A stretch of DNA of 64,000 nucleotides from the NCBI RefSeq assembly GCF_037042905.1, contig NC_087253.1, forward strand, positions 17,546,001 to 17,610,000, read 5' to 3'. Under the pieces are notes generated by a model. The model did not search any database. It was not told where the DNA came from and saw only the letters and a program-made list of their open reading frames with translations. This document shows positions 2,950 through 42,819 of this stretch, in pieces (positions within the stretch are counted from its first letter, which is position 1; every line of letters starts with the position of its first letter). Source of the stretch: Lytechinus pictus (lineage: Eukaryota). The translations under genes and the position numbers were made by a program.

Positions 2950-4044
2950 TCATGATACAAAATGTGCGCAGCAACAAATAGCAATTAGAATAAACAGCGA
3001 TAACAATATTAGTATTAAAACCAATGCATTTGAAGGAACAGGTTTCCGCTGCATCCGGTGAAATTTTCTTCCTTTGCCATCAAAGGTTATCCAGGCATGC
3101 CAGTGTGTTTTCATTTGTTTTACAGACAGTTGGCTCCATAGGTAATCCGGTGGCTTAGTGTGCGGATGCAGTTCTTTGAACAACTTTCCTCTGTTGACAA
3201 TGGAAATTCCTTGCGAGTGCAAGAGCATACCGCAGTAGACATCATCGAAAGGCACTACAGGCAGCAATTTCTTTGAAGCATTGTATAGCTTCTGGACTAC
3301 ATCCTGAGATAGGACGTAGCCGGCGCCATACGGCGACACCGGATAGGTTTCCTCTGGGTATATCGCCTTCGGACAGTACCATTTGCTTGACGTATTTCGT
3401 ATTGGCTTACCCACGTTTGGCTCACCGAGGCAGAAGTTGGTACGGTTCCGCGAAGGTAACCCATCGAGGTCTTGAACAAGGGTCACGATGTCCAGCATCA
3501 CATCATCGTCTATCGACATCATAAATTCAGTGTTCCTACAGAAGTTGGTCACCCACTTGAACCCCATAATAAGCTTGATTGTCAGGTTATAGTAGTGGTC
3601 TTTGAAGTCCGCCTGCAGAATGTCTCCGTAGAGACCAGTCTCGTCCTTGATGCTCTCCTGGTCCTGTGCTACCGTTGTTGTTCCGAGGACAAATAACACC
3701 CTAGCAGATATATTCATCGTCTTGATGTCACTCATATATGTCTCCCGAATCACGTCCCTTCGTGCTCTGTGCGATGGTGCTGACTTAATCAAGACGAGTA
3801 ATGTTGTATTGCTATCCCCTACCTTGCACGTATCCATAGGATTTATTAGAAAGTCATAGATGTTTACTTTTAGCGTCCTAGGTGTCCAACGAACAGTCTT
3901 CAGCCAGCCAACTGATATCGGGTTTTCCTCTACAGGTACTTTTATAAACCTGCTTGGAAAGGTAAGCCATTGGAAAATGCATATGATGAAAATTACCCAA
4001 CATACCACCACTTTCACCCTTTTCCACGATTTCCGGCCGATCAT
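2950..4044 (-). CDS. GT31 beta-1,3-glycosyltransferase paralog A (B3GNT/B3GALT/brainiac-like), ~364 aa, N-terminal signal-anchor plus C-terminal hydrophobic segment
   Basis: Within ORF 2950..4158. Motifs LLVLIKSAP, RRDVIRETY, E..LYGDILQADFKDHYYNLTIK, SIDDDV (DxD), SKWY, YP..YGAGYVLS, FDDVYCG. Start placed at MIGRKSWKR (ATG 4044) by alignment to paralog D; basic N-tail then TM VVVCWVIFIICIFQWL. Confidence 0.92.
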   Translation of the reverse strand: MIGRKSWKRVKVVVCWVIFIICIFQWLTFPSRFIKVPVEENPISVGWLKTVRWTPRTLKVNIYDFLINPMDTCKVGDSNTTLLVLIKSAPSHRARRDVIRETYMSDIKTMNISARVLFVLGTTTVAQDQESIKDETGLYGDILQADFKDHYYNLTIKLIMGFKWVTNFCRNTEFMMSIDDDVMLDIVTLVQDLDGLPSRNRTNFCLGEPNVGKPIRNTSSKWYCPKAIYPEETYPVSPYGAGYVLSQDVVQKLYNASKKLLPVVPFDDVYCGMLLHSQGISIVNRGKLFKELHPHTKPPDYLWSQLSVKQMKTHWHAWITFDGKGRKFHRMQRKPVPSNALVLILILLSLFILIAICCCAHFVS

Positions 4045-5540
4045 ATATATCATGTATAACAGAATATAAACCGAATACATATCGTGGCATTTACATGTGT
4101 AACATAATGGTGTTCGCGTTGTCTGCCAAATATATCCCGAATTCAAGATTTCAACCATCGAGAGTAGGTCCTATGCATATCTAAAATGATAATTGTCCGT
4201 GTCCATGTGATAGTAGTAGTATAAACGTTTACATGACTCATTTTGACGAAATACCATTCGGAATAGACACCAGTTGATAAAATGTTATATCGACCCACAA
4301 CTTTGCCACCGTGGTATATAGCAATGATGAACCGTTTTTATACCACACGGGCGCGTTTGGTTTCGAGTGAATGTTCTATGCAGTGCTACCAACGTCACGT
4401 CTGCTTGTACACCGTTGCCCAGAAAAATGAACTGATAGATCTTTCATAATTTTGACAACAATGGAATTTGAGTAACGCTCTTATTTTAGCTGCAATTATT
4501 TGCTCTCCTTTGCTTTCCTATAGTGCCTGCCCCCGCTGATTGTCCATCTGGATATGTATGAGTTCTGGTACTACAAAAATAGAACCATTAAGACGTGTTA
4601 AAAAGGGACGAGATATTTATAACCATTGCTACTGAAGTCAAGTTGGCTTATTATTAGTGTTGGTAAATATTTTACCAGATCTGTAAAAAAGCATGAAAGC
4701 TTATCATTAAGCATCAAGTGTACCGATGGCATGAGATCCTCTCCGATTAAGGAGCCATTTTTGAAATGTAAAACAATCTTGTATGTGTACATTTTATTGG
4801 CACTGACCTATTCGGCAGTTTTTCCTTGCCTTTTTCGTCTCATTAATTTATTCTTTGATTACCCCATTGTGATCGCTTTTGCTTATTAAGAAAGGCTGGT
4901 ATGATATACCGAATTAGTCAGAGTCATTTCGTGCGCCGAAGTCAGGTTCTCCACAGAAAAAAAGAAAATAAAAAAAATCATAGTGAAAATACATATTCGG
5001 CCACTATATAACATAAACATTACATGTAGTGATTGAACTTTCTAAACGTCGTCGTGATATTCTTGAGTTTGAATTGAATTTATTTAGATTACTATAATTA
5101 TCTACAAAATCGCTGTTACAGTGTATTACATGATTTGCCAAAAGCATGAATGCAGGATAATGAAAAGGAGCCTACAGAAAAGGAGAAATAGCAGTCTGAC
5201 AGATTTGATTCAAGACTACTTCCTCTTGTATATTTCTTTGATCTATATAATATCCTCTTGCCAGAGAAACATAAAAAAAATTGGCTAGCATTTCCCTTTA
5301 ACCTTTCAGCCTCGCTTCTGTTCGACAATACACTGATGTATTCAGCCACATTTATTATAGAATTTCGATCCAGCCTTCCACCCGAATCCACGCCCCAACG
5401 AGTTGTATCAATGCTTTGATCACAGATGAAAATATGCATTAAAAAAAACCCCACATCAATATATCAAGGTTGGTTATGACTTCAACAAACCCACCGTAAG
5501 AGGGCGATACGATACATCTCCCTCAACAGCGTATCAGGGG

Positions 5541-5592
5541 ATCCAAATATCAGCGTATTTTAGCATCCAAATATCAGCGTATTTTAGCATCC
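5541..5592. repeat. 24-bp tandem duplication
   Basis: atccaaatatcagcgtattttagc twice, plus atcc. Confidence 0.9.
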
Positions 5593-5764
5593 ACTCCGCA
5601 GCGCAGATGTTTTCTGCAACGTTGAGAATCTGTTGAATATCGCCGTCAAATAACAATTGACAGATTAAAGGTCTTTGTTGAAAATTGGTGGATTGGGACA
5701 GCACATAAAGTTTCGGACCGGACAAAAATTGCAAATATATCGTTTGTCCAGTGTAAAGCACGAC

Positions 5765-6010
5765 ATTGGGTGATTTCAAGTTCAGTGTTGACCTTTTGGT
5801 GTTGGTGTTAGGTCAAATTTTACACGATTATAACACGAAACATAAAATTGAGGTGATCCCGAAAAGTCACTCACTAGTTGTTGTAATGTCAATAATGTGA
5901 TCTGGATCAGTTTTACAAACTCATAATAAGTTTTGGAGTTAGGGGAAGTAATCCAAATTCCAACACCAACACTAACACCAAGGCCAACACCGGACTTGAA
6001 ATCACCCAAT
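5765..6010. mobile_element. MITE with ~30-bp TIRs
   Basis: attgggtgatttcaagttcagtgttgacct ... aggccaacaccggacttgaaatcacccaat. Confidence 0.8.
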
Positions 6011-6509
6011 GGTGTTGTGATTCAACGATTAACGACAAAAAATGGCTACTTTGTTACGAAGAGCTTTTGATAAAGGATAATCTGCGTTATAGAAAGCGTC
6101 CGCGGAGTGATTGCTAACACGCCTTAATCACGCGATTTGCAAGAACATTATTGTGCTTTCGTTTTATTCATTTATTTATTGATTTCCCTCTTTATGCAAG
6201 CTGTTAATTAGCCTGCGAGCTGATTAATGTTTTATCCTGTTGAGAGATGTTTAAATATACAAATTAGAAAATACCTAAATTCATTTAGACATTTATTTAT
6301 TTTGTTTTCTATACCAAGATATACAAGATACGAGAAATACAAGATATTTATTCATTTGTCTTTGCAAACATGATTACAAAGAAATTTGTTTTCCACTGGT
6401 GTAATATTACATTAGACATGCATGAACAAAATAAAACAAAGAAACAAATAAGTTACTCAGGTATGAAGCAGATACAATAAAACATTTACAAAAGTTTGAG
6501 TCGTCCAGA

Positions 6510-6645
6510 ATACTTATCATAATTATTATCATTCAAATATTGTAATAATTATTATCAACATTATTATTATTATTATAATTATTATCAATATTATTATTAT
6601 TATCATCACTACTATTACTTTTATGTGATTATTATTATTATCAAA
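6510..6645. repeat. (ATT)n-type microsatellite
   Basis: Degenerate att/atc trinucleotide runs. Confidence 0.85.
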
Positions 6646-6699
6646 AAACTTTCCGGGATATCAGTACATCAGTGTCATCATTTCGCTAGGAACAGAAGT

Positions 6700-7165
6700 T
6701 TATTTAGCGTTGAGCTTGTGAATTGAATTTGTGGATAGAGTCGGGTATGAATGAATTTCTAAAATGGGAAAGGCGGGTTGAAGTGGGACGAAGTCTTATG
6801 CCAGAACGATTGAATGAGTAGTATGATTGAGTGGATGAGAAGTGTCTTTCATGATTGAGCTGACTTTTCCTACGATTTGATCGGTACAGTGGGATTCACT
6901 AGAGGCCAAATCTACCCCTATTATTCTTTGCGCTATTTTAAGGGGCTTTTCTAGTTTCATCTTGTCCTCTTTTGAGAGATTGCCAAATACACATAACACA
7001 TTGAAGAGAAGGACACTTTTAATGACTGAATTATAGAACAGAGTTAGTATCGTGTTGTCTACATGGAATGATTTTAACTTGCGGAGAAAGTACAACCTCT
7101 TGCTAGCCTTCCCATAAACCAACTGCGCGTTTTCCCTCCATGACAATTTGTCATCTAAACCCAGG
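6700..7165 (-). mobile_element. LINE reverse-transcriptase C-terminal fragment (Rex1/Babar or CR1-like)
   Basis: LG.DDKLSW..NAQLVYGKASKRLYFLRKLKSF..LTLFYNSVIKSVL..; a downstream frame reads RLSHFRNSFIPDSI, typical of the ORF2 end. Confidence 0.8.
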
Positions 7166-7223
7166 GTAACCAGGCAATGACTTAAACATTGTTTTATCTG
7201 AGGGCTTCACGAGAGGTTACATA

Positions 7224-7465
7224 TACAGCAAAAACTTTGGTGTTAAGCGGTGTACATAGAGGACCACACCATGCAGTTATTTTAGCCCGGTGTTAGTTTA
7301 ACATATATAGGTGTAACATATAGGTGTTATTACAACACATTTGGTTGTTACATCTACATTTGGTGTTATGTTCAATCTCTAGGGTGTTATTTTAACACCT
7401 CAGGGTGTGGTCCTCTATATATAGACACCAATTGGTGTCAGTTTTAACACAGTTTTTACAGTGTA
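7224..7465. mobile_element. CACT/CACA-ended MITE (same family as 37729-37971, opposite orientation)
   Basis: acagcaaaaact..ggtgttaa ... ttaacacagtttttacagtgta; internal ggtgt/acacc repeats shared with the 37729 copy. Confidence 0.75.
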
Positions 7466-7799
7466 CACATAAAGCTACAAACAGTGATTACAACTGAAAA
7501 GCTGAACAAAGAGAAAACAATACAGCAATATTATGCCAACGGACCAGCAAGATATAAACATACATACACACATGCACACAGAGCCGTCGCTAAGGGGGGG
7601 GGGGGGGGATGTGACACCCCCACTGATCTGGATATCGCCGGTAATTTCAGCGCTACCGTCGGGAAAAATGAAGAAAAGGGGCAAAAGGAAAAAAAAGGGA
7701 GAAAGAGAAAACAGCAAGGCATATTAGCGATGTTGTGTCTCACCCACTTGTGAAAGTAACCAGAAATATCGTGATTTGCGAGGGCACGCAACAGAATTG

Positions 7800-8400: not shown

Positions 8401-8824
8401 AGATTTTTTTTTTAGATATATAGTATACACTTTGGTGTGATTTTGGAGATTACCCTAAATTTTCTACCAAACTACTATAACTATTTGTGCTTCCACGATC
8501 CCGCCACGGTCATTTCGGCCCGTATAGTACATTGTAATATATCGCGTGAATCGGCTAATTTCTGACGCTCATAAATGACACACTTCTCCATTCTATACAT
8601 AATGATTTTGCAAAACCAAAGTCAACGCAAAATAACAAAAGGGAATCCGACAGCGGGATCTCGGGGGGATTCCCCGATGCTAGAATAGGCGTGTCTCAGG
8701 AGACAAACAAGCTAAACAAATAGATATGACGAGCAGTGGCGCAGTGAGCAAAAAAAAAAATGAAGGGGGCACACAAGATCTAGACTATTTCTGCCCACGT
8801 GAAGACTCTACATATCTCTCCATG

Positions 8825-10508: not shown

Positions 10509-10856
10509 ATGCCATGTAAGAGCCCTTTACTTCCGCATAAGAGTATGTAGGCCAACAGTCTTAATAGTAACTCGTGTCTGTTGACCAACTAGGTCCATGG
10601 TTGAGTAAAACATTCATAACTTGAACTTTGAATTAATATAGGGATATTTGCTTACCGAATTCATATAGTGTTTACGATACTCTTTATCTTCATTATACAG
10701 AATTTATGATCACGATCTCTGCCTAATGTGGACTCGGCGCAAGGCCAACGCGTAAACAATGGCTTTGTTTGAAGTATATATATAATTACTATGAGAAACA
10801 GAACGGGTCAAACCAGACTCCAATCGTCGCTTGTTCTTTCCGAGGTTCTTACCAGC

Positions 10857-11951
10857 ATGTCATCTTATAGATCGCCGAAATGTTGTGCGAAGAAATTCTG
10901 TGCAATGGTCACATTGTCCATTTTTCTTCTGGTCAGCTCTGCTTGGATGTTTCTAAAAGTCGTTGATCAGAATCCATATGGGTTTGGCTGGCTGAGGACC
11001 GTTCATTGGACACCAGGGACCCTACAAGTGGATTCCTATGGCTTTCCGATCAATCCGATGGATACGTGTAAGGAAGGGATTACCACGATCAAGCTGCTGG
11101 TTTTGGTGAAGTCCGCACCCTCTCATAAATCACTCAGGGATGCCATACGAGAGACCTATGCCAGTGGTATCAAGGAGTACAATGTGTCTGCAAGGGTGTT
11201 GTTTGTCCTAGGAAACACTGAGGATGAGCAGAACCGAAAAGCCATCGGGAAAGAAGCTGAACTGTACGGGGATATCTTACAAGTGGACTTTACCGACCAT
11301 TACTATAACCTCACCATCAAACTCGTTATGAGCTTTGAATGGGTGGTCAACTTCTGTCGGGACACTGAGTTTGTGATGTCCATAGACGATGATGTTATGC
11401 TTGACGTTGTGACTCTTGTCCAGGATTTAGAAGCGCTACCAATGGAGCGTCAGTCGGACTTCTTCCTGGGGATGCCAAACACCTACCCACCAAACCGTAA
11501 GGTGTTCAGCAAATGGTACATCCCGAGAGAGTTGTACCCAGAGGATACCTACCCAGTGTCACCGTTTGGTCATGGATATGTAATGTCACAGGATGTGGTA
11601 CAGAAGCTCTACGAAGCCTCCAAAGAATACCCTCCTATAGTTCCATTTGATGACGTCTACTGTGGAATGCTTTTGCAAAGGAAACACATCGACATTGTCA
11701 ACAGACTAAACTTCTACAAAGAGCTTCATCCGAAGAGAAGATCCAAAGACTACATGATGCTCGAACTCTCAGAGGGGGCCATGAAACGAACTTGGGCATC
11801 CATGCGCTTCGGGACCCTATTCGAAAATCCCCAAAATTTCACATGTACCAATTCAGTATTGTTTTGGTTGATATTACTATTATTACTCATAATCATTATT
11901 GTAAAGTATTTGCACCATGCCAGTATTGACCACCAGATAACTCCTTCGTAG
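10857..11951 (+). CDS. GT31 beta-1,3-glycosyltransferase paralog B, ~364 aa, two hydrophobic segments
   Basis: Within ORF 10791..11951. Same GT31 motif set (LLVLVKSAP, GDILQVDFTDHYYNLTIK, SIDDDVML, SKWYIP, FDDVYCGM). ATG 10857 (agcATG, purine at -3) gives the same length as A; upstream in-frame ATG 10791 is an alternative. Confidence 0.92.
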   Translation: MSSYRSPKCCAKKFCAMVTLSIFLLVSSAWMFLKVVDQNPYGFGWLRTVHWTPGTLQVDSYGFPINPMDTCKEGITTIKLLVLVKSAPSHKSLRDAIRETYASGIKEYNVSARVLFVLGNTEDEQNRKAIGKEAELYGDILQVDFTDHYYNLTIKLVMSFEWVVNFCRDTEFVMSIDDDVMLDVVTLVQDLEALPMERQSDFFLGMPNTYPPNRKVFSKWYIPRELYPEDTYPVSPFGHGYVMSQDVVQKLYEASKEYPPIVPFDDVYCGMLLQRKHIDIVNRLNFYKELHPKRRSKDYMMLELSEGAMKRTWASMRFGTLFENPQNFTCTNSVLFWLILLLLLIIIIVKYLHHASIDHQITPS

Positions 11952-12511
11952 TTACACATTTGAAGACATACAGTTGTGCTCAAAATTTAGTGAACCCTAC
12001 CACAAAATGCACTCCTTAATTCATGCTGACTGTTGAATGTAGACAACAGCACTACAATGTTTGGCGAGCCAAGATAAACACCTTTTATTGAATGTAATAT
12101 TATGTTTCCTTACTTCACATTTAAATATCTAGCACATGGCAGAACCTGAACACTTTGAAATATGATAATTTTCCGGTTTGATTCGCTAACCTTTGAGCAT
12201 CACTGTATATAGTCAATTGGTCTACAAGCCTAATTGTCGTTTAATTATGCACTTCACTTCCTTCGTCTTCATCATCTGCTAATGAAGCTGAATAGTTGAT
12301 CCAATATCCACCTTATCTAGTTTTTATTTTTACTTTGTCAAATGAGAATTTGGTTGATAAAAAGTTTGACATATCCATAAAGACTAAGTAGACATTAGAC
12401 GAAGTGGTTAAAGCCTTAATGGAAAATAGACATAATGGTAGGAAGATGAAGTGGCAGTTAGACCAAAAGGTTTTTAAACGAACTGATTGGAGACAAAATG
12501 GGTTAGATCAT

Positions 12512-17129: not shown

Positions 17130-17328
17130 ACATTATTATTGTTATTTTTGAACAAGTGCACACCTAGTTACCAATAATGCATATAGCATTCCCATTTATT
17201 TGAAAGCAGGATAAAATAGCATTGTAGATTAAACACCTAGCTGACGGCATAGGTGCCGCGGCCGGGGATCGAACCCCGGACTTTCCATGTATAGCTAGGC
17301 GCATTAGACCACTCGGCCACGGCACATC
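17130..17328 (-). mobile_element. tRNA-derived SINE (family also at 21276-21358 and 53538-53715)
   Basis: Minus strand: A-box TGGCCGAGTGG, B-box GGTTCGATCCC, body ttcaaataaatgggaatgctata, (aat)n tail. Confidence 0.8.
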
Positions 17329-17404
17329 TCATGTCTATTATTGGGTAATAAGTCTATCCATTGAAGTGTTTTGGTTTCTTGTTTCTTTAAAGGGAAGAGC
17401 GGGT

Positions 17405-18390: not shown

Positions 18391-18394
18391 TGTA

Positions 18395-21275: not shown

Positions 21276-21358
21276 GGCATAGGTGCCGCGGCCGGGGATC
21301 GAACCCCGGACTTTCCATGTATAGCTAGGCGCATTAGACCACTCGGCCACGGCACATC
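21276..21358 (-). mobile_element. SINE tRNA-like head, identical to 17246-17328
   Basis: 83-bp exact match; no SINE body follows. Confidence 0.8.
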
Positions 21359-29921: not shown

Positions 29922-31115
29922 TTACACAAAAGAAAAATTGCGTCCTTGGTATGTTTTACTACCTAACTTTTTTCTTGAGATGGAGAGTATTAGGCCGCTG
30001 AAAACCAGTGGCCTCGAGAGCGTTCTACATTCTTCCAGATTGTGATGGTACCAATTCCTTACAATGATAGTAATAAGTAATGAAATCAATATTAATATAA
30101 ATAAGACTGAATTTTCGCATGTAAACCTTTTGGCGGATCCATACAAGTTTTCCAAGCGCATGCAATTCCAAGTACGCTTCATCTCATTTTCGGAGAGTTG
30201 TAACTTCATGTAGTCTTTGGTTCTTCTCTTCGGATGAAGCTCTTTGTAGAAGTTCAGTCTGTTGACAATCTCGATGTTTCTTCTTTGCAACAGCATTCCA
30301 CAGTAGACGTCATCAAATGGAACTCTAGGAAGGCATTCTGTGGAGGCTTCGTAGAGCTTCTGTACCACATCCTGTGACATTACATATCCATGACCAAACG
30401 GTGACACTGGGTAGGTATCCTCTGGGTACAACTCTCTCGGGATGTACCATTTGCTGTACGCATTTCGGACTGGTGGGTACGTGTTTGGCTTCCCCAGGAA
30501 GAAACCCGACTGTTGCTCCATCGGCAGCGACTCTAAATCATGGACAAGAGTCACAACGTCAAGCATTACATCGTCATCAATGGACATCACAAACTCGGTG
30601 TCGCTACAGAAATTGACCGCCCATTTTAAGCTCATCACGAGTTTGATGGTGAGGTTGTAGTAATGGTCGGCAAAGTCCACCTGCAAGATATCCCCGTACA
30701 GTTCAGCCTCCTCCCTGATGCTTTCTTTATCATGTTTATCCTTAGTATTTCCTAGGACAAACAACACTCTGGCAGACAGGTTATACTCCTGAATAGAATT
30801 GATATAAGTCTCCCGGATAACATTCCTAAGCGATGTGTGAGTGGTTGCCGACTTGACCAATATCAGCAACGTGTTGCTTTTCGTTTCTAACTGACATGTA
30901 TCCAAAGGATTAATCAAGAAGTCATAGATGGCAACTTGTAGTGTACCAGGTGTCCAACGAACAGTCTTCAACCAGCCCACTTTAGTCGGGTTTTCGACCA
31001 AGGTTACGGTAATCACCATACAGACACATGTTACCGCAAGAAAGATGGAAACGAATGTAGCACAGAGTACGATCACATTTCTTTTTGACACTGAACATGT
31101 TGAACGCCTCTCCAT
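29922..31115 (-). CDS. GT31 beta-1,3-glycosyltransferase paralog C, ~397 aa, two hydrophobic segments plus ~45-aa C-terminal tail
   Basis: Within ORF 29922..31376, which starts at a non-ATG codon. First in-frame ATG is 31115 (aacATGg, strong Kozak; MERRSTCS), then TM VIVLCATFVSIFLAVTCVCMVI and the full GT31 motif set. Confidence 0.92.
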   Translation of the reverse strand: MERRSTCSVSKRNVIVLCATFVSIFLAVTCVCMVITVTLVENPTKVGWLKTVRWTPGTLQVAIYDFLINPLDTCQLETKSNTLLILVKSATTHTSLRNVIRETYINSIQEYNLSARVLFVLGNTKDKHDKESIREEAELYGDILQVDFADHYYNLTIKLVMSLKWAVNFCSDTEFVMSIDDDVMLDVVTLVHDLESLPMEQQSGFFLGKPNTYPPVRNAYSKWYIPRELYPEDTYPVSPFGHGYVMSQDVVQKLYEASTECLPRVPFDDVYCGMLLQRRNIEIVNRLNFYKELHPKRRTKDYMKLQLSENEMKRTWNCMRLENLYGSAKRFTCENSVLFILILISLLITIIVRNWYHHNLEECRTLSRPLVFSGLILSISRKKLGSKTYQGRNFSFV

Positions 31116-31575
31116 GTTCCTATGCGCAATGGAAGATCCCCAGTATAACTCGGAGTTGTATTTATTTGGGTGGCTCCACCCAATATTTTTAATGATCCAA
31201 AAGTATGTGGAATTTGCTGGTTTGTCCTCGTGGAAAAGAAAGACCGTCGAACACACTGGAATATGGTCGTCATTGGGAAGATATCGCCACAACAGTGGTT
31301 TGCCCCCGTGCGGAACAAAAATAGTCAAATATGGTTCGCATTGGAAGATAGATCGCCGTAACAGTGAGCGAATCAAACGAATGCTTTATGCACAACCGCT
31401 TTGCGTTTATAGCTACCAGTCGATGCAGTGGGTGTCGCTACCATCATTTTTAATCGGGGCGTGACAATACCAACGACCTTTTGTGGGGTTAAGAGGAAGC
31501 TCCAATCTGCATTTGATTTGATTCATTTTGGATCATTCGCAATATGAAAATTGTGAAATGAAGGTGGGACCATGT

Positions 31576-32430: not shown

Positions 32431-34620
32431 TTTATTAACAAACTTCGTTCATATGGCATGAATATTTTGTTTTAAACTATATACAATGATAACATAAACA
32501 AAAACATTCATAACTGTATGTCGTATAAATCAGTAATACATCAATACATAGATTGCCAATTATTATAAATATATACATCTATATACAAAGAGAAATGACG
32601 AATTGAAATTTAACATAAAGAAGGTGTAGCATAATGCAATATACATAAGTTATCTAATTATCGAATACAAATCAGGAAGTAAATGAATGCATAACGTTAG
32701 AGATATATCTTTGGTAATGGTGGCTTTGGTGGATTTTCGATAGCTTAAATGAAATTTAAAAAGAAAAATGTACTTGATGTTAAAACTCACCCCTTTTGTT
32801 TATAATCGCTTTGAAGAACTTACAAAAATTATCAATTAAGTTTTCATTATCAAGTTTCATTATGAATATAAATTTGTCTTCATCGCTAAGGTTCTTAAAG
32901 GGATGGTCCGTGCTAAAAATATTTATATCTTAATACATAGAGTAGAGTTCACTGAGCAAAATGCCGAAAATTTCATCAAAATTGGATAACAAATAATAAA
33001 GTTATTGAAGTTTAAAGTTTAGCAATATTTTGTGAAAACAGTCGTCATGAATATTCATTAGGTGGACTGATGATGTCACATCCCCACTTTCCGTTTTCTT
33101 ATGTTATTACATAAAATCATATTTTTTTCATTATTTCATACTTGTGTGAATATTATGTCTCCCTTATAATGAAATAATTTGCAGCAATAAATATCTAATG
33201 CACTAAATCAGTTGTCAATCCAATTTTTCTAGTTCTTGGAGGAAAAAATTTGATTAAACCTAATTTCATATAATAAAATACATAAGAACAAGTGGAGATG
33301 TGACATCATCAGCCCACCTAATGAATATTCATGACGACTGTTTTCACAAAATATTGCTAAACTTTAAAATTCAATAACTTTGTTATTTGCTATCCGATTT
33401 TGATGAAATTTTTGGCATTTTGCTCAGTGAATTCTACTCTATTTATAAAACTATAAATATTTTCAGCCCGGACCATCCCTTTAAGCTGTTCATACATTTC
33501 AGCTATTTTGTAAAAAAACATCACCCTTTCAGTTGTGTGTACATTACATTCTATTATCGTGTGATACTCATCCCCAATCCTTCCTGAATTACAATTATTG
33601 CACATTCTTAAATGTGAGGGTATTTTATCCGGACGTCTATGTCTTCCAGTTTCAATGGGTAAATTATGGGAACTTATTCTAAAGCGACAGATGTTTTTCC
33701 GTATTTTCTGATTTTTAAAAGTTAATAGATATTTCTCTGTTTGTATATTATGTTTAAAAAGTTTATAAGGTCTCTATTTATTTTGTTCAACATCATTTGC
33801 TCGATCATTACGTAAATCCAATAAGAACTGGCGATTTAAAATATCTTCAACTTTGTTTTTTATTTCTTCTTCTACTACTCTATCACTATCGAATATCTCA
33901 CCTAGTTCTAAACAATTCTTATTCACATCCAAATATATGTTAAATCCCTTAAAAAGGTGTTGCAGATTTCCTAGCCAGCATTCGCAATTATTCTCAATTA
34001 TCTTTTTGTTTTCTTCAAAGGAGTGATGTAGCAAAGAATCTTCATCTATACTTCTCATTCGAGCATAATATTTTCCCAAGTTTCCGCTAATTTGTGTTAT
34101 CAATGGATACATTCCAACTTCTGCAAGTATTGCTAAGTGGCTGTTCCTTTTGTTAATTCCTAAGACATTTCTCAACCATTGAAACTGGACACACTGAATT
34201 TCATTTCTCAGATACAACTTTGAATTACCATTTGCAAGCTCCGCTAACTTTTTAAAGTTGACGATAAAAGCGCCCCATACCTCCGAACCATATAAGAGTA
34301 TTGGCTTTATTAAAGAGTCAAATATTCGTGATGCGGTTTTTATATTTGGAAGATTGTAACCAAAGATTGAAATAATTTGAATAATACTCTCTTGGCTTTA
34401 TCTGCCAGATTAACTCTTGTATCTTTGAATGAACCGCAGTTATTGAAAACCAAACCTAAATATGTTGCATGTTTAACAATCAATGTTCTGACCGTTTACC
34501 TCGGAAGCCTGATCTTTTTCTAATTTTTTCCATTCTTGTTACAAATCATCATTTTTGTTTTGTCCGGATCAACATTCAATAGCCATTTATCACGGTAAAT
34601 ACCAAGTCTATCTAACAATG
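32431..34620 (-). mobile_element. 5'-truncated LINE (L2/Daphne/RTEX-like ORF2 C-terminal half) inserted in the MITE
   Basis: IKPILLYGSEVWG, LGINKRNSHLAILAEVGMYPL, RFRISSHNLPIETGR, C..C...GDEYH..IEC zinc knuckle; aataaa at the 3' end near 32431. Confidence 0.85.
32899..33480. mobile_element. Kolobok-like MITE (inner element) inserted in the LINE
   Basis: TTAA-agggatggtccg ... cggaccatccct-TTAA, ~190-bp inverted arms. Confidence 0.9.
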
Positions 34621-35630: not shown

Positions 35631-35633
35631 TAA

Positions 35634-36010
35634 AGGCCACCGCACACCTTACGACTGTTCGCGATCCGATTTTGGAACAAATCGCATTTTGCTCACTTTC
35701 TGAAAATGTGAATGGAACATATCATTTTATTTGAGGTTAAAATCAATTGAAAGAATACTAATATAACCATTTTGAAATATTGCAAGCTTTTATTTTGGAG
35801 TAAAGGCCAAATTAATTTCAAATCGTAGCCAATCGTACGACCGCTATGACGTCAATACGACTAGATATCAAATTCGCTTTTATTCTAAGGATGACAGCAT
35901 AGTCACAAATTTGAATATAGGTATTCGTACGATGATTTCGAACATTACACAGTAAGATATTCCAGGTCTCAATACTAGCATCAAATTCTACTACATTTTA
36001 TTCTGAAATA
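35634..36010. mobile_element. Truncated copy of the PIF/Harbinger-like MITE at 38207-38622
   Basis: aggccaccgcacaccttacgactg...; interior is the reverse complement of 38245-38620. Confidence 0.75.
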
Positions 36011-36451
36011 TCATTAATCTTTTGGTTACCCCCCCCCCTTTTTTTTTGCTTGTCAAATTTTTCTTCGGAAGAATGTGCCCCCCCCCCTTTGGAAAATCCT
36101 GTAACCGCCCCTGTTTAGAGGCAGAAACCCTGCGCAAAGCACATACTCACCGCATACGCGCCGCATCTAGGCCGGGTCATTGACCTGTGCGCGCCATTTC
36201 AAAGACTTTATACACAAAGAATGGTTCGATCCAGTTCGTAAAATCAAAGGAGGGGGTTGAACCGGTTCGTAAAAATATTAGATTTGCCCTTATTTTTTTT
36301 TTTTAAATACGAATTTAGATCTGAAATTTGGAAAAACAATAGAGTAAATCATGGGCTTTCAGAATATGCTCCCCTCCCCCCAAAAAATTTCGAAAATTTG
36401 ACCGATAATTAGGTTTGAGCCGGTTCGTAAAATTACAAACGAAATGTTGTG

Positions 36452-36542
36452 TTATCTGCAATTTGACTGCCAAATCATTAATAGGAAAAGCAATGAGCCT
36501 ATGACTGATCCTTGCGGAACTTCACATTTTATTGACTGATAA
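36452..36542 (-). mobile_element. Small LINE RT fragment
   Basis: QSIKCEVPQGSVIGSLLFLL matches the RT motif GVPQGSxLGPLLF. Confidence 0.6.
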
Positions 36543-36552
36543 CCGGGGGGGG

Positions 36553-36713
36553 GGGGGGGCGTTTCATCAATATTTTCGTCCGACAAGTTGTCAGATCTGA
36601 CAACTTTCCTGGATTCTGATTGGTTGAGAAGCACTGTTACTATAGTAACTGTCGGATAAAATAGGACTTGTCGGATAAAACGTCCGACAAGTCCTTTCAT
36701 GAAACGCTCCCCA
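36553..36713. mobile_element. Palindromic MITE (copy at 51573-51732)
   Basis: ggggcgtttcatcaa ... ttcatgaaacgctcccc; tccgacaag repeats. Confidence 0.85.
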
Positions 36714-37407
36714 GGCCTACATTTTTTTTTCTACCAGGCTGATAAACCTCAGAGTATGATCACGATGGCAGGCTGATTACATGATGGTCATTGTTTTTTA
36801 AGTAAAAGTTTGAAGTCGAGACCATCGAAGGTTTTCTTAGGTCCATGACTTCTCCTGTCATATGTTATTTAATTGACATTGCACTTATATTAAATTTGCA
36901 TTTAAGAATAGTCAGTTGTTTTTATTTCCTGAAACCATATTGATTTAAATCTAGAGAGTGGAATCTAGGAATCTGTTTGTGGTATATTTTTTTAATTGGA
37001 TATGCTGTGAAAATAGAGATAGGCCTGTGTGAGTTTTACACGAGGAATGTTTTTTTTCCCGGAAATATAACATCCCGTTGCAAGACATCCTTAAAATTGT
37101 TCGATACTTCTATTAGAGCTATATGGAATAAAATGTGTTTTAATTATGTAGAAGCAATGATTTTTAAGTATTTGAAATCGTAAACCAAAGTACGATATTC
37201 TTAAATATCAGGTTGATTCTTGTTATTCAAAACGTATATAGCTTATACCCATTAATGATTTATTTTCAATGAATGATTTACAAACACCACATAGCTAGTC
37301 CCTGGAAAGCAGCGAACAATTTACCTAGTTAGTGGCTATGGAAACATCTAATTGAAGACATTTCACGAAGAGCCATTGAGACAGTCATACTGGTACCTAA
37401 ACAATCT

Positions 37408-37577
37408 GGTGGGTGTTTCATAAAGCTGTTCGTAAGTTAAGAACGACTGGTGATCCTTTCATGTGTTAATTGGTGTACACCAAAATGTTCATTGGCGATG
37501 GTAAAAGCGCGTAAGGATCACTAGTCGTTCTTAAAGTCGCTCTTAACTTACGAACAGCTTTTATGAAACGGACCCCC
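37408..37577. mobile_element. MITE (family clustered at 39426-40050)
   Basis: gggtgtttcataaagctgttcgtaagttaaga ... tcttaacttacgaacagctttatgaaacggaccc-like termini. Confidence 0.8.
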
Positions 37578-37728
37578 AAGTAACAGATTTACCGAGGGGG
37601 GGGGGGGTGAGCGTTTCGTGGAACAATATGTCAGTAATCTTCACTAAAAATGTTATAGTCTACTGAAATCCGAATGAAATCCTTGAACCTGGATGTCCCC
37701 TTCACTACTGAGCGAGACCCTCGACTTA

Positions 37729-37971
37729 TACACTGTAAAAACTGTGGTGTTAAAACTGACACCAGTGGGTGTTAATAGAGGACCACACCCTCTGGTGTTA
37801 AAATTACACCCTAGAGATTGAATATAACACCAAAGAGTGTACATGTAACAACCAAAGGTGTTGCAATAACACCTATAGGTGCTAAACTAACACTGTCAAT
37901 TTAACACCGGTGTAAAATCACTGGTGTGGTCCTCTAAGTACACCGGTTAACACCGCAGTTTTTGCTGTGTA
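37729..37971. mobile_element. CACT-ended MITE flanked by TA
   Basis: ta-cactgtaaaaactgtggtgttaa ... ttaacaccgcagtttttgctgtg-ta. Confidence 0.8.
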
Positions 37972-38206
37972 CCATACATTGGATCCGTGTTTCAGCGCTA
38001 CTTGATGGTATGGATGGTATAGAAAACTTCGTCGCCCTGTATCAGCAAGTTCGCCATCTACGGCGAAAGTCTGAGGAACATCGGAAGCGAGTTATTACCC
38101 AAATTTATAATTGTTTCTAATACCGTTCACAAACTATCACGCTAATCAGACAAACGTCTCCGATAGCATCCAAAATGATATGAGTATATCTCCAAAGTAC
38201 TCCTAA

Positions 38207-38622
38207 AGGCGACCGCACACCTTACGACTGGTCTGCGACCCGATTTCAGAATAAATTGTAATAGAATTTGATGCTAATATTGAGACTTGGAATATCTTAC
38301 TGTGTAATGTTCGAAATCATCGTACGAATACCTATGATCAAATTTGTGACTATGCTATCATCCTTCTTAGAATAAAAGCGAATTTAATATCTAGTCGTAA
38401 TGACGTCATAGCAGTCTTACGATTGGCTACGATTTGAACCTAATTTGGACTTTACTCCAAAATAAGGGCTTGCAATCTTTCAAAATTGTTATAATATTAT
38501 TATTTCAATTAATTTCAACCTCAAATAAAATGATATGTTCCATTCACATCTTCAGAAAATGAGCAAAATGCGATTTGTTCCTAAATCGGGTCGCAGACCA
38601 GTCGTAAGGTGTGCGGTCGCCT
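38207..38622. mobile_element. PIF/Harbinger-like MITE, intact
   Basis: TAA TSD at 38204-38206 and 38623-38625; ~40-bp TIR aggcgaccgcacaccttacgactggtctgcgacccgattt. Confidence 0.9.
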
Positions 38623-39425
38623 TAACATGCCTAAGGAGAGCTGCTATTTTATGAAATTAAGAAATAAAGAAAAATCATCTTCTTTTATTTCAATTTCCTC
38701 AAAATTTTCAGCAATCGAGTGGGCAGCATCCTTCCGCAGAGAAAATTTTAAATGGTGATGAAAATATTAGTAGTTTCGAAGACGAAATGTATTATATCAA
38801 AACCATGCGGACCATAGTCTACAAAACGCTCACACACACACACACACACATCCCACACTTTTTCCAACACAACCTGACACCTCTACATACACAGCTCATT
38901 TGAAATATTACTTTACAAGTGAGGACATCTCATATAAAAGACTAGTAATACTTAATCCTTCTATATGCGAGAACATACATGGTCCGTTTGCGAGGTACGC
39001 ATACCGAGGAGGTCATCGGTGTGTTGTGCATTCGTCCTCGGTCCAAATGTGAAATTCTTACGTGTGCCCTCATTTTTTAAAATGGGTAAGCGAACACCTC
39101 ACAACCATAATTATGCTCACGTATGTAATTGATCCAGGTCTCATACAGCTCAAACATACGGGAGTGAATTTTTACCATTTCTCAGCGTGAATTAAACATA
39201 CACCATGTGAAATGATGACCACCAGAAGTGGTACTTCTGAAAAGATGTTCATAAGTTACGAATGGCTTGACCTAGGACTAGAGACTTGTTTTCCACTGCT
39301 ATATCAGATTTTCAAAACTTCGAATGAATCCATCAGCTGAAGTTAAATTCGATCTCTATAAATATAAAATTTTGATTTTTCTTAAGCGCTTAAATACCAA
39401 AATATAGAAAAGATCTATGCTCCTG

Positions 39426-40050
39426 GCGGGTGTTTCGTAATGCTGTTCGTAAGTTAAGAGCGACTTTAAGAACGACTGGTGATTCTTGCTTTTGGTCAAT
39501 GGTATTTACCAAAATGTTCATTGGCGATGATTTAGCGTGTAAGAAAGGTTCATCCGTCGTTCTTAACTTACGAACTGCTTAATATGAAAGACCCACCCGA
39601 TGTTAGAACTTCCATACTTTTGTTATCCCATCCTGCGGAAGACCAGGGGCCGTTTCATAAAGCTGTTCGTGAGTTCAGAGTGACTTTAAGAGCGACTGGT
39701 GATCCTTTCTTGTGGTAAATGATATTTAGAATTAATGCTCGTTGGTGATTATTTAGCGCGTAAGAAAGGTTCACCAGTTGTTCTTAAAGTCGCTCTTAAC
39801 TTCCGAACAGCTTTGTGAAACATCCACTAGGTATAGGTGTTTATAAAGCTGATCGTATAATCACGTTTGAACTTCCGCACGACTGGAACATGTTCTTAGG
39901 TGTCAATAGGTGCCAATATAGGGTTTATTTAGCACAATAGTTAATGGCGACCAGGGATCCGTAATTACCAAACAGCTTCATATCCTAAAAACACCAACTA
40001 GGTTCCAGTCGTGCATAAGTCGCGGGTACCTTACTACCAGCTTTGTTGAA
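39426..40050. mobile_element. Cluster of three adjacent related MITEs
   Basis: Units at ~39426-39598, 39645-39827 and a more diverged 39833-40050, each with tttcataaagctgttcg/cgactgg motifs. Confidence 0.7.
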
Positions 40051-40463
40051 CCGTCACTGATATTCTCCCCTTTTGAAACTCGGGGTCATATTCACAATAT
40101 GATCAATATGATAAAAAAAATGCAATCATTTCGTTCTATTGCTGAAAAGAAGCGAACCATGTCAATGCATTTCTTTCATTAGCGCTACAAACCGCACAGC
40201 CATGACAACTACAGAGCCTGCATATTTGAATTGGGTACTTATTAGTGATGGATGTCTATATCATAGTTGCACAGTAACATCCCCGATGCTCTGAACTGCG
40301 CATGGATTCTGCCTACATACCTACCAAATAAATATTAACTTTAATACTTTCTCAGTGGTCATTCATAAAGACAGGGTTATTGTTTGTTTTTGAGGAATCA
40401 TTAAATAACCATATATTTATTTTGTCAGTGTTGAATGTCTAGTTTACAAAAAACCCTTAAATG

Positions 40464-40499
<36 letters not shown>

Positions 40500-41718
40500 T
40501 ATTTGAGTACTTTGTTGAACATGTTGAAGGGACCAACTGTTGCCTTTGTCCGTGTGTGCAGTGAAAAAAAAACCATCCCTAAACGTGAGTACAGAAGAAG
40601 CAAACGACCAAGAGCAAAAGTAGGCCTACTGCGTAGGCGTAGACAGGATGTGAAGGAAAAGCCCGTGAATTTGTAAACGATGATCTTGAACTTTAACTTG
40701 AACTATGTTTTGCCACGTCTTTCGAAGTATGATAAATGTGACAATATGGTTACGAAATATAAGATAAGCCCAAAAAGGCAGTATATGAACACAAACAAAA
40801 GGTGAGATCTATGTAAACTTACAAGCGAGTATTATACCAAGACATATTTGAATTACTATGGTCATCCCCCAAACATGAAATTAATCTCTTTCTCCACCCC
40901 GACACGTTGTTTCAATCCCTTGTTAGGGCAAGCAGGGGGCGGAGATAATAGAATGCATAAGAGTAGCGAAATTTATTTGATGGCATCAAGTTTATATATA
41001 CATATATATTTTGTCATGATACACCATTTCTGTATAATTACCGTTTCCACTTTATATGTCTTTCATTCATGTATTTTTAAATGAATGTAATGTAGATCTT
41101 CAATAATTTTTTTTAAAACAATTTTTATAAATCCCGATACAAATTTCCTTTATAAATTCAATTGAATTTATAAAGATTAAGAAAAAAAAGAGCAGTAATC
41201 CCGACAAGCCGGATTGCGTCCTAGATCAGTTACAAGCAATGTGAATGATATCAGCCAGGTGCCACAAAATACACATAATCATACATTACTATCTATTAGT
41301 ACGCCATTGTCACAATAATTTCGCAAATGCACGTAAACAATATAATTTCAATTTTTCTTGGGCAACGGTGTATAACCACACGTCACAATGCGGGCTTTGG
41401 CATAAAGGCTGGCTTTTTTTCGTTCAATAGCATTTCTGATCGTCATATACGTGAAAGGTGAGACCGCATCTGTGTCTATGTCCTTTAGAGACGACTGCTG
41501 GAGTTGGTGTATAGCTGTAACTACCAACTGGTGTCTATTGTGAAATTATGAAGTGGGAAGTACAGGATTATATAAATTCGCCTACCATCATGGGAGTCTC
41601 TGCGCCATTTCCCAAAGAACTACGCCTTCTGTCCTTTGGATGAAACCGGCAATGACTGGAGTATTAGGAAATATACACAAACAGACTCCGAAATATATTT
41701 GATATTTTCAGTGGTGCT

Positions 41719-42819
41719 ATGAAGATGATGAGATGCAGATTTTTGTGGAGGGTTGTAATGATGTGTGGGGCTATGTACGTCATATGCGTCTACCATTTGA
41801 CCACATATCCTGGAAAATTGGTACGGGTGTCACCGAAGCCTAACCCAATGAAAGTTGGATGGTTAAAGAAAGTTCGCTGGACACCTGGAACCTTAAAAGT
41901 TGATATCTACGACTACTCGATAAATCCTGTGAATACGTGTAAGACAAATGATAGGAGGAACACCACATTACTCATCCTGATAAAGTCAGCACCATCGCAT
42001 AGGTCACGCAGGCAAGCTATTCGTGAGACATATATCAGCGACATTAAAAGAAACAACATGTCTGTCAGGGTTTTATTTATATTAGGAAATACCAAGTACG
42101 AACGTGAGCGAGAACTCATTAAAACAGAGGCTGATGAACAGAAGGATATTTTGCAGGCAGACTTCAATGATCATTACTATAACCTGACTATTAAGCTCAT
42201 TATGGGTTTCAAGTGGGTCACCAACTTCTGTAGGAATAGTGAATTCGTGATGTCGATCGATGATGACGTGATGCTCGATATTTTCACACTTTTTGAGGAT
42301 TTACAAACTTTCAAGGGGAAGAATCGGACAAACTTCTGCTTGGCTAAACCGAATACTTGGCCACCTGACCGGAAAGAAGACAGTAAATGGTACTGTCCGA
42401 AGGCGATATACCCATATGAAGCTTTTCCTGTGTCACCTTACGGGCATGGATACGTTCTTTCGCAGGACGTCGTACGGAAACTCTACGATGCCTCAAAGAC
42501 ATTGCTACCGGTAGTGCCTTTTGATGACGTCTACTGCGGTATGCTAATGAACGTGAAAAGCATCGGTATTATCGACAGACAGAAATTTCATAAAAAACGT
42601 CACCCAGATAGCAAGGCAGGTGACTATTTAAGATTAGAGTTAAATACATTCGAAATGAAAAGGGCCTGGGAAGACTTCGAGGGATTCTTTAAGAAAAGGA
42701 GACCCGACCGATATGAAAGGCTGAGAAAACCATCATCGGTCACTGTCCCATTATTATTATTATTTTCAGTATTAGTTATAATTATCATCTTGTGTAGTGT
42801 ACTTTCTAATTGTGATTGA
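41719..42819 (+). CDS. GT31 beta-1,3-glycosyltransferase paralog D, 366 aa, two hydrophobic segments
   Basis: ORF 41719..42819. Motifs LLILIKSAP, RRQAIRETY, DILQADFNDHYYNLTIK, SIDDDVML, SKWYCP, GHGYVLS, FDDVYCGM; C-terminal VPLLLLFSVLVIIIILCSV. Confidence 0.93.
   Translation: MKMMRCRFLWRVVMMCGAMYVICVYHLTTYPGKLVRVSPKPNPMKVGWLKKVRWTPGTLKVDIYDYSINPVNTCKTNDRRNTTLLILIKSAPSHRSRRQAIRETYISDIKRNNMSVRVLFILGNTKYERERELIKTEADEQKDILQADFNDHYYNLTIKLIMGFKWVTNFCRNSEFVMSIDDDVMLDIFTLFEDLQTFKGKNRTNFCLAKPNTWPPDRKEDSKWYCPKAIYPYEAFPVSPYGHGYVLSQDVVRKLYDASKTLLPVVPFDDVYCGMLMNVKSIGIIDRQKFHKKRHPDSKAGDYLRLELNTFEMKRAWEDFEGFFKKRRPDRYERLRKPSSVTVPLLLLFSVLVIIIILCSVLSNCD

Follow-up and report, generated by a model that had tools for sequence, protein, structure and literature searches.

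Why does a group of sea urchin glycosyltransferases carry a membrane-length hydrophobic segment at each end of the catalytic domain, and could both segments serve as anchors? The question is raised by a 64,000-nucleotide stretch of the Lytechinus pictus genome (NC_087253.1, positions 17,546,001 to 17,610,000; hereafter, the window). Four intronless GT31 genes, A to D, were confirmed among the open reading frames of the window, and the four peptide strings quoted in the original prediction were found verbatim in these frames. The coordinates and strands are as follows:

2950-4158, minus strand: open reading frame of gene A
2950..4044, minus strand: gene A, intronless GT31 CDS, beginning at Met 39 of the ORF, which is open to 4158 (PF01762 E 3.6e-43)
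10791..11951, plus strand: gene B, intronless GT31 CDS within its open reading frame (PF01762 E 1.7e-42)
29922-31376, minus strand: open reading frame of gene C
29922..31115, minus strand: gene C, intronless GT31 CDS with a PF01762 match, with the start Met of NCBI model P0004
41719..42819, plus strand: gene D, intronless GT31 CDS within its open reading frame (PF01762 E 6e-39; AF2 mean pLDDT 92)

The genes belong to a cluster of tandem duplicates, four of whose five members lie inside the window; the fifth (E; L003 = P0002) is located 9 kb to the left of it.

The enzymes of the cluster are B3GALT/B3GNT5-like GT31 glycosyltransferases. The Pfam domain Galactosyl_T (PF01762) matched all of A-D with E-values of 6e-39 to 4e-43, and the cluster proteins keep the DDD motif plus ten invariant columns, C74 and C171 among them. 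As had been noted before, the sequon NLT is present in A-D, where it lies within the conserved YYNLT motif, and NTT and NRT are present in A and D. The closest solved structure was human B3GALT5 (E 2.6e-33), and the best Swiss-Prot structural matches of the AF2 model of D in Foldseek were B3GALT1, B3GNT5, B3GALNT1 and brainiac. B3GALT1, B3GALT5 (PDB 8zwp), B3GNT5 (Lc3 synthase), B3GALNT1 (globoside synthase) and Drosophila brainiac, several of which are glycolipid-directed, share with the cluster the Pfam family, the GT-A fold, the DXD and YYNLT-type motifs, an intronless CDS and a basic N-terminal tail followed by a hydrophobic segment. However, these are single-anchor type II enzymes that end a few residues past the last helix, whereas in the urchin clade a linker and a membrane-length helix are added and the stem is shorter still. 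All of the top 30 Swiss-Prot matches in Foldseek ended at or before residue 339 of the D query. Thus, the extra C-terminal helix is, as predicted, missing from all reviewed relatives.

Hydropathy of the terminal segments was expressed as the maximum over a 19-residue Kyte-Doolittle window (KD19), for which the usual membrane threshold is 1.6. The C-terminal segments, each of which shares one uninterrupted open frame with the catalytic domain, are:

2965..3027, minus strand: C-terminal hydrophobic helix of A, 21 uncharged residues, KD19 3.40, stop 4 aa further
11853..11903, plus strand: C-terminal hydrophobic helix of B, 17 residues, KD19 3.05, then a 15-aa tail beginning with K
30060..30110, minus strand: C-terminal hydrophobic helix of C, 17 residues, KD19 2.52, then a 45-aa tail with 8 K/R
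42739..42807, plus strand: C-terminal hydrophobic helix of D, KD19 3.16, AF2 helix 342-364, stop 3 aa further

With 17-26 uncharged residues and Kyte-Doolittle values of 2.5-3.4, the C-terminal runs were all well over the threshold. They were more hydrophobic than the N-terminal segment of the same protein in A, B and D, while the reverse was found in C. In the model of D, the helix at 342-364 showed mean pLDDT values of 77, 94 and 83 in its 10-residue blocks. The helix of A, which is closed by a CCC motif, is kept in L. variegatus with hydrophobic replacements only. Of 28 GT31 frames recovered from this genome, all five of the cluster carried a C-terminal hydrophobic run and none of the other 23 did; the tail therefore exceeds what is expected by chance. 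In our reading, it would represent a real membrane helix.

A helix encoded in the genome need not be part of the functional product: the tail could be AT-rich 3' read-through that is spliced out or untranslated, or the gene copies could be silent or decaying. In two NCBI models, P0005 (B) and P0007 (A), the tail is lost by splicing to these exons:

12133..12165, plus strand: alternative terminal exon of P0005, replacing the tail of B after a GC-AG intron (11796-12132)
47..112, minus strand: alternative terminal exon of P0007, spliced to a cryptic donor, G/GTATG, at about 3230

In addition, B or D sequence occurred in none of the RNA-labelled runs searched, and two rRNA-depleted RNA runs contained essentially zero reads on B. 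The tail DNA is AT-rich and microsatellite-like ((TTA)n/(ATT)n-like; 50-59% T), and the core of B showed a near-neutral pN/pS of 0.75 between the two species, a figure confounded by B/C gene conversion. On the other hand, the tail is included in NCBI models P0002, P0003, P0004 and P0168. With GC-AG borders, the intron of P0005 is weak, and its acceptor AG is AA in L. variegatus. The cryptic donor of P0007 sits in the invariant DDVYCGM codons of A and is a by-product of the invariant Cys-Gly-Met codons; the part of L. variegatus compared, the first 1.5 kb of L032, showed no counterpart of the P0007 exon. Removal of the tail by splicing, which had been named at the outset as one outcome that would speak against a second anchor, is seen in two gene models but finds no counterpart in the L. 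variegatus sequence compared.

Moreover, five paralogs and three orthologs from L. variegatus keep the tail frame open in spite of DNA prone to stops, of which each of the two alternative frames contains up to three in these stretches. In L. variegatus, the orthologs of A (L031:366-1517(-)), B (P0003) and E carry intact tails. The pooled tail pN/pS between L. pictus and L. variegatus was 0.20 (0.034/0.168; Fisher p for the tail 9e-4), as compared to 0.34 for the core. Between B and C, pN was 0.143 and pS 0.75 in the helix (pN/pS 0.19), while the residues past the helix were unconstrained (pN 0.445, pS 0.324). Therefore, the constraint falls on the helix itself. The measured ratios indicate that the tail is kept by purifying selection, as had been supposed from its retention alone, and a tail without function is considered very unlikely.

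In the tree, the seven tail-bearing Lytechinus proteins formed one clade (SH-aLRT 95) with the tail-less L. pictus genes L006 and L011 as sisters, which indicates a single origin of the tail within the Lytechinus clade. The cluster ancestor acquired a C-terminal extension, some 45-80 residues long and encoded by AT-rich, (TTA)n/(ATT)n-like DNA, the core of which is the hydrophobic helix of 17-26 residues, i.e., of membrane-spanning length. The tail-less urchin paralogs (L006 = P0006 and L011 = P0013 of L. pictus; P0008-P0010 and P0287-P0289 of S. purpuratus) have catalytic domains 45-55% identical to those of the cluster, with the same motifs. They end 6-12 residues past the M..W helix, L011 having a 40-residue extension that is non-hydrophobic, and their stems comprise 35-94 residues, in contrast to 7-22 in the tail-bearing clade.

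C-terminal helices were also found in GT31 proteins of scallops, a clam and other invertebrates, namely in 4 of 117 mollusc proteins sampled, including those of Pecten maximus (XP_033758940; P0154), Mizuhopecten yessoensis (P0171) and Ruditapes philippinarum (P0242), and in P0120, P0123, P0137 and P0076. Like the urchin proteins, they have hydrophobic segments at both ends of the GT31 domain, and both urchin tail styles occur among them, i.e., a helix running to the very end or a helix followed by a basic tail. They differ by long stems and by identities of only 25-35%. Since they branch in the other half of the tree at three or more separate points, surrounded by relatives that lack a tail, their tails are independent gains and not part of the same subfamily. 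Thus, the predicted lineage-specific subfamily held as a clade restricted to Lytechinus, while the notion of an echinoderm peculiarity was weakened.

Whether the C-terminal helix is a second anchor or the only one depends on the N-terminal segments:

3958..4011, minus strand: N-terminal hydrophobic segment of A, signal-anchor-like, KD19 2.34, 5 K/R before it
10896..10955, plus strand: N-terminal hydrophobic segment of B, 20 uncharged residues, KD19 2.08
30996..31076, minus strand: N-terminal hydrophobic segment of C, 27 uncharged residues, KD19 2.74
41740..41793, plus strand: N-terminal hydrophobic segment of D, KD19 1.65 (weakest of the five), AF2 helix 5-29

UDP-glucuronosyltransferases, including UGT8, are type I ER glycosyltransferases with a C-terminal transmembrane helix and a short cytosolic tail. 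If the cluster proteins were likewise type I, with a cleaved N-terminal signal peptide and the C-terminal helix as sole anchor, the anchor would have been swapped from the N- to the C-terminus and no second one added. B shows a plausible small-residue cleavage context (SSA, then W) after a 13-residue hydrophobic core, the weak segment of D is interrupted by an Arg, B and C display the layout of transmembrane helix and basic tail known from type I proteins, and near-loss of the stem would be tolerable if the N-terminal tether were dispensable. However, the N-terminal uncharged runs, which are preceded by basic residues, comprise 14-27 residues (18-27 with flanking hydrophobic residues), and the helix of D has 25 residues in AF2. 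As h-regions of cleaved signals typically comprise 7-15 residues, these lengths count against cleavage. A and C are without a small-residue cleavage motif. With the exception of D, the segments are as hydrophobic as, or more hydrophobic than, those of the tail-less paralogs, which must anchor by this segment. UDP-glucuronosyltransferases moreover differ in family and fold (GT1, GT-B) and in their dilysine retrieval motif, which is absent from the C-termini of the cluster. A type I arrangement is thus judged unlikely, although it keeps some plausibility.

The charges around the C-terminal helix differ between cluster members. A K or R immediately follows the helix in B and C, and the tails after the independently gained helices of Ruditapes, P0120, P0123 and P0137 hold 3-6 K/R; this is the pattern that would be expected for a cytosolic C-terminus. 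A, D and E have 5-8 K/R in the 15 aa before the helix (8 in D) and just 2-4 aa after it, a layout that is at odds with the positive-inside rule if the C-terminus is cytosolic and resembles a GPI-attachment or tail-anchor signal. If the tails of A, D, E and the scallop proteins were GPI signals or otherwise removed hydrophobic peptides, the mature enzyme would be lipid-anchored on the luminal/extracellular leaflet and might be carried to the cell surface. The absence of a basic cytosolic tail in A, D and E and the small residues before the run in A (S-N-A) and D (S-S) would fit, the latter lying 27-28 aa from the end, a distance typical of GPI signals. However, the run follows the candidate omega site without a polar spacer, an acceptable omega triplet is missing from E and the scallop proteins, and GPI anchoring normally requires a cleaved N-terminal signal. 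The five tails share one origin, and a GPI signal is incompatible with the 15 and 45 hydrophilic residues that follow the run in B and C. The grouping of Cys residues towards the distal end of the helix, as CCC in A and with other Cys in D, E and the scallop proteins, would rather suit S-acylation of a transmembrane helix at the cytosolic face. Hence, we regard lipid anchoring as quite improbable.

The same charge layout, with a helix within 25 residues of the C-terminus in A, D and E, would be compatible with post-translational insertion of a tail anchor and a cytosolic catalytic domain. This is extremely unlikely: SRP would first be engaged by the hydrophobic N-terminal segment, which all five proteins retain together with the basic residues in front of it; C74 and C171 are kept, as are the sequons of a luminal GT31 domain; and the charge pattern is reversed in B and C.

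A luminal loop anchored at both ends, with cytosolic termini, is the arrangement that we favor for the products of these tandem genes, giving it somewhat better than an even chance. We infer a membrane insertion, a topology and a functional effect of the tail that would run as follows. As in other GT31 enzymes, the N-terminal segment would remain uncleaved as a signal-anchor and direct the catalytic domain to the ER/Golgi lumen. The C-terminal helix would act as a stop-transfer anchor, so that both termini would be cytosolic and the GT-A domain a luminal loop. Such a hairpin is the most likely topology, and with the added helix the enzyme is probably fastened to the membrane by both ends. Since the stem is shortened in the tail-bearing clade, the domain would be held near the membrane at both ends.

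SPPL3 sheds single-anchor Golgi enzymes widely (PMC8918473). With two anchors, cleavage of just one of them, whether in the stem or within the membrane, would probably be unable to shed the catalytic domain, and a bias towards membrane-proximal acceptors, e.g., glycolipids, would also be likely. The short stem, together with nearest relatives of the glycolipid type, hints only weakly at a glycolipid acceptor; glycolipid, cell-surface and lectin roles are speculative.

The proposed topology resembles that of two known proteins. In CD39/NTPDase1, the ecto catalytic region lies between N- and C-terminal transmembrane domains with cytosolic tails. The precursor of GlcNAc-1-phosphotransferase alpha/beta, GNPTAB, is a 'type III' protein whose luminal catalytic region lies between N- and C-terminal transmembrane domains, with both tails in the cytosol (PMC4498157). 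Both differ from the cluster in that they are much larger and belong to unrelated folds and families, and GNPTAB is cleaved into two single-anchor subunits, whereas the cluster proteins showed no sign of cleavage or of sorting motifs in their tails. Within GT31, a layout with hydrophobic segments at both ends already occurs sporadically in molluscs, and the cluster is not unique in this respect.

The original prediction placed four GT31 glycosyltransferase genes, A to D, in the window, and all four were recovered at the predicted positions as uninterrupted open reading frames. A fifth cluster member, E, lay on the same contig, outside the window:

2950-4158, minus strand: gene A, uninterrupted open reading frame
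10791-11951, plus strand: gene B, uninterrupted open reading frame
29922-31376, minus strand: gene C, uninterrupted open reading frame
41719-42819, plus strand: gene D, uninterrupted open reading frame
G000:C9:17537001-17538065, minus strand: gene E (locus L003; P0002, NCBI XP_054761745), fifth cluster member, 9 kb left of the window

The proteins A to D matched the Pfam family PF01762 (Galactosyl_T, CAZy GT31) with E-values of 6e-39 to 4e-43 (134-148 bits; cut-off 23), and all four matches covered profile positions 1-193 of 195. Their pairwise identity was 52-59%. The GT31 signatures considered were the DXD metal/nucleotide-sugar motif, RxxxRxT[WY], D..D.Y.NLT.K and [ED]DV..G. By sequence comparison, DDD, IRETY, DHYYNLTIK and DDVYCG were invariant in all cluster members, and D181-D183 and R98/R102 were conserved across 80 homologs. 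The nearest solved structure was human B3GALT5 (8zwp, phmmer E 2.6e-33), followed by B3GNT2 (6wmm, E 1.7e-25). A GT-A fold was indicated by the AF2 model of D (mean pLDDT of 92), with a Foldseek probability of 1.00 to the B3GALT1 and B3GNT5 models. Since the signature motifs are invariant, there appears to be no reason to regard the cluster genes as dead enzymes.

The textbook Golgi glycosyltransferase is a type II protein with a single anchor, and its level is controlled in part through cleavage of that anchor and secretion of the catalytic domain. The cluster proteins departed from the canonical architecture of one anchor, a stem and a C-terminus that lies free in the lumen by a second hydrophobic helix after the domain; a membrane-length hydrophobic helix was present at each end, as in two-anchor proteins of the GNPTAB or CD39 type. 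The hydrophobic strings originally quoted were present in all four proteins. Uncharged runs comprised 13-27 residues at the N-terminus and 17-26 at the C-terminus. The C-terminal runs reached 2.5-3.4 in their best 19-residue Kyte-Doolittle window, compared with 1.65-2.74 for the N-terminal segments; the C-terminal value was the higher one in A, B and D, and the order was reversed in C (N-terminal segment 2.74, tail 2.52). In the AF2 model of D, built from an 80-sequence alignment and used here for secondary structure only, residues 5-29 formed a 25-residue helix at the N-terminus and residues 342-364 a 23-residue helix at the C-terminus. E had an N-terminal segment like that of the other members and a 21-residue C-terminal hydrophobic run, identical in its L. 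variegatus ortholog P0168, that ended 2 residues short of the stop. Of the 28 GT31 open frames that this genome yielded, the five cluster genes had the tail run and the 23 others lacked it, stopping 6-12 residues past the last conserved helix. A tail-less sister gene, L011 (G000:C2:21876175-21877032; P0013), carried a 40-residue non-hydrophobic C-terminal extension, and the C-terminus of this subfamily thus seems prone to extension.

A second change accompanied the tail. Between the N-terminal hydrophobic window and the first conserved motif (GWLK) lay 7-22 residues in the tail-bearing clade, compared with 35-94 residues in all tail-less relatives that were measured. The stem was thus nearly lost in the clade while the C-terminal tether was gained, a correlated change that the original prediction did not contain.

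Selection on the tail was assessed by comparison with L. variegatus, in which A, B and E have intact orthologs (loci L031 and L032) that retain both the tail and the position of the stop; the comparison covers these three genes. With the three pairs pooled (Nei-Gojobori), the tail showed a pN of 0.034 and a pS of 0.168 (ratio 0.20, Fisher p 9e-4), and the core a pN of 0.037 and a pS of 0.107 (ratio 0.34). All replacements inside the hydrophobic runs exchanged one hydrophobic residue for another, except for one Leu/Ser. Between B and C, the helix had a pN of 0.143 at a pS of 0.75, i.e., with synonymous sites saturated, whereas the residues after the helix had a pN of 0.445 and a pS of 0.324. 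The constraint therefore acts on the helix itself rather than on the residues that follow. In its two alternative frames, the tail DNA contained up to three stops each, and one of ten such frames was free of stops. By these sequence comparisons, the tail is under selection, and the claim that its retention reflects selection is supported by the L. variegatus tails, the pN/pS of 0.20 and the constraint on the B-C helix.

B and C also shared a stretch of 116 nt with perfect identity (11507-11622 and 30341-30456), located within a 944-nt inverted repeat of 81% identity (10986-11929 versus 30034-30977). In this stretch, the B ortholog of L. variegatus matched L. pictus C and not L. pictus B, which indicates gene conversion between B and C that inflates the between-species pN/pS of B (0.75).

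Maximum-likelihood analysis of 80 GT31 proteins placed the five L. pictus genes and the L. variegatus B and E orthologs, the seven tail-bearers from Lytechinus, in one clade (SH-aLRT 95). The tail-less L. pictus paralogs L006 and L011 were its sisters, and the S. purpuratus proteins fell into a different subclade. This placement implies that the tail was gained before the tandem duplications and before the split of L. pictus and L. variegatus. A profile search with eight tail-bearing sequences retrieved no further members outside Lytechinus, and none of the additional S. purpuratus hits possessed a C-terminal helix. On present sampling, the gain is confined to the genus Lytechinus, in agreement with the lineage-specific subfamily that had been proposed.

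T made up 50-59% of the DNA coding for the helix, which contained (TTA)n/(ATT)n-like runs. Potential membrane helices are known to be frequent in thymine-rich sequence (PMC7005711), and the composition fits recruitment of such sequence. The AT-rich, microsatellite-like tail would then neatly illustrate the addition of a membrane helix from thymine-rich DNA to an existing enzyme. As a possible source, read-through into an ancestral 3' UTR left no direct trace in the sister genes: all-frame translation past the stops of L006, L011, L007 and L012 revealed no cryptic hydrophobic run.

The tail could be absent from the protein if transcripts spliced it out, and the NCBI gene models were divided on this point. 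It was kept in P0002 (E), P0003 (the L. variegatus B ortholog), P0004 (C) and P0168 and removed in P0005 (B) and P0007 (A). The P0005 intron (11796 to 12133) was a weak GC-AG intron, the acceptor AG of which reads AA in L. variegatus. The P0007 donor is a canonical GT that arises from invariant Cys-Gly-Met codons (TGC GGT ATG, 3225-3235), which are the same in other paralogs, and comparison with the first 1.5 kb of L032 in L. variegatus revealed no equivalent of its downstream exon. The same GT donor was used with a different downstream exon by an L. variegatus model (211-aa product, L031:1-1250), and both models truncated the catalytic domain. The tail-less isoforms look like unconserved by-products, and purifying selection on the tail implies that the unspliced message is translated.

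Searches of sequencing runs with B and D retrieved no run recorded as RNA that contained either gene. In two raw rRNA-depleted RNA runs, coverage of B amounted to about two read pairs, located on its 5' part, and the tail had none; all remaining RNA reads near B came from a high-copy repeat at 11966-12070. Two contig runs showed flat depth over genic and intergenic DNA, which identifies them as DNA. Thus, B was silent or very low in those RNA samples, which do not address the tail. The repeat follows directly after the B stop, and its summed contig depth was in the thousands compared with about 9 in the flanks. All RNA reads at this site fitted only partly and ran into other sequence, and they therefore derive from other copies of the repeat.

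With regard to topology, the N-terminal segments carried 4-5 basic residues ahead of the uncharged runs. Since these runs are longer than typical cleaved h-regions and within the range of the tail-less paralogs, for which this segment has to serve as the anchor, an uncleaved signal-anchor is favoured. At the other end, B and C had K or R right after the helix, followed by 15 (B) or 45 (C) residues, of which 8 are K/R in C. These flanks would correspond to a classical stop-transfer pattern with a cytosolic C-terminus, and hence to both termini being cytosolic. The flanks of A, D and E did not fit this arrangement: their helix stopped 2-4 residues from the end, with 5-8 basic residues ahead of it, a layout that is at odds with the positive-inside rule and similar to that of a GPI or tail-anchor signal. 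GPI anchoring of A and D would account for C-termini that nearly coincide with the hydrophobic run, as they do in A, D and E; in a manual rule check, however, the polar spacer (about 5-10 residues) following an omega site was absent from every member, E was without an acceptable omega triplet, and the runs of B and C were followed by 15 and 45 residues. It is ranked low, as a minor possibility for A and D. The cysteines clustered toward the distal end of the helix, which would suit palmitoylation on the cytosolic face, where such clusters are common. Taken together, the homology of the tails, the missing omega-spacer and the cysteine cluster rank a transmembrane segment above GPI for all five proteins.

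A tail-anchored cytosolic protein, with no N-terminal anchor and a single transmembrane segment within about 30 residues of the C-terminus, was rejected, as all five retained the N-terminal hydrophobic segment with its preceding basic residues and the luminal features were kept. UGT-like type I ER glycosyltransferases combine a cleaved signal peptide with a C-terminal transmembrane segment and a dilysine signal (KKXX/KXKXX); no tail of the cluster contained this signal at positions -3 to -5. Most likely, the cluster encodes hairpin-anchored GT31 proteins, a real, selected and lineage-specific architectural variant with predicted topology and expression.

Similar tails were sought elsewhere. 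Among the top 30 Swiss-Prot structural matches to D, including B3GALT1/2/5, B3GNT5, B3GALNT1, B3GNT9 and brainiac, none aligned past residue 339, and 4 of 30 AlphaFold-cluster matches aligned through the C-terminal helix. In a 1.8-billion-protein library, the 150 best representatives included five non-urchin GT31 proteins with a C-terminal helix, one of them Pecten maximus XP_033758940. The helix was also present in 4 of 117 sampled mollusc relatives, namely a scallop clade (51-69% identity) and one Ruditapes protein. As the mollusc and other tail-bearers occupied at least three separate places in the tree among tail-less proteins, the feature has arisen repeatedly. Two-anchor GT31 proteins might have been an already described, widespread subfamily. 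The open-access literature on GT31 proteins with a C-terminal transmembrane segment, on two-anchor glycosyltransferases and on sea-urchin GPI-anchored galactosyltransferases yielded no description of the present architecture, an absence that is weak evidence; the mollusc tails show that the feature is not unique.

It is very improbable that the terminal helices of A, D, E and the scallop proteins are lipid-anchoring signals (GPI or palmitoylated) that place a GT31 protein at the cell surface. Such a protein would act as an ecto-glycosyltransferase or a carbohydrate-binding receptor, e.g., in gamete or cell-cell recognition, and in that case the tandem duplication and the gene conversion between B and C would be signs of a diversifying recognition family. 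For the hairpin-anchored enzyme, nearness to membrane glycolipids would be a plausible benefit of the tail; the nearest characterised relatives, B3GNT5, B3GALNT1 and brainiac, are glycolipid enzymes. The tail could also plausibly make the enzyme resistant to the anchor cleavage and secretion that many single-anchor Golgi enzymes undergo (PMC8918473). In functional terms, the nearest analogue is the GlcNAc-1-phosphotransferase precursor (GNPTAB), a two-anchor 'type III' protein (PMC4498157). A GT31 lineage with a selected second anchor and a near-deleted stem would be a natural experiment on how double tethering affects retention, shedding and the choice between glycolipid and glycoprotein acceptors, and the recurrence of this solution in molluscs suggests a design option that is general but has been overlooked. 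Practical importance would be modest unless topology and functional consequence are demonstrated.

The window contained some further features. A run of 298 N (45909-46206) represents an assembly gap or masked sequence. Two identical 83-nt direct copies were located 4 kb apart (17246-17328 and 21276-21358), and their reverse complement resembled the 3' half of a tRNA (GGTTCGATCCCCGG...). ARAGORN and Rfam detected no tRNA or Rfam elements in the window, and the copies probably represent a tRNA-derived SINE or belong to a recent segmental duplication. Between C and D, inverted repeats were present at 32894-33485 (196-nt arms, 93% complementary, 200 nt apart) and at 35661-38594 (234-nt and 123-nt arms, 91-94% complementary, about 2.3-2.5 kb apart), and these look like transposon termini.
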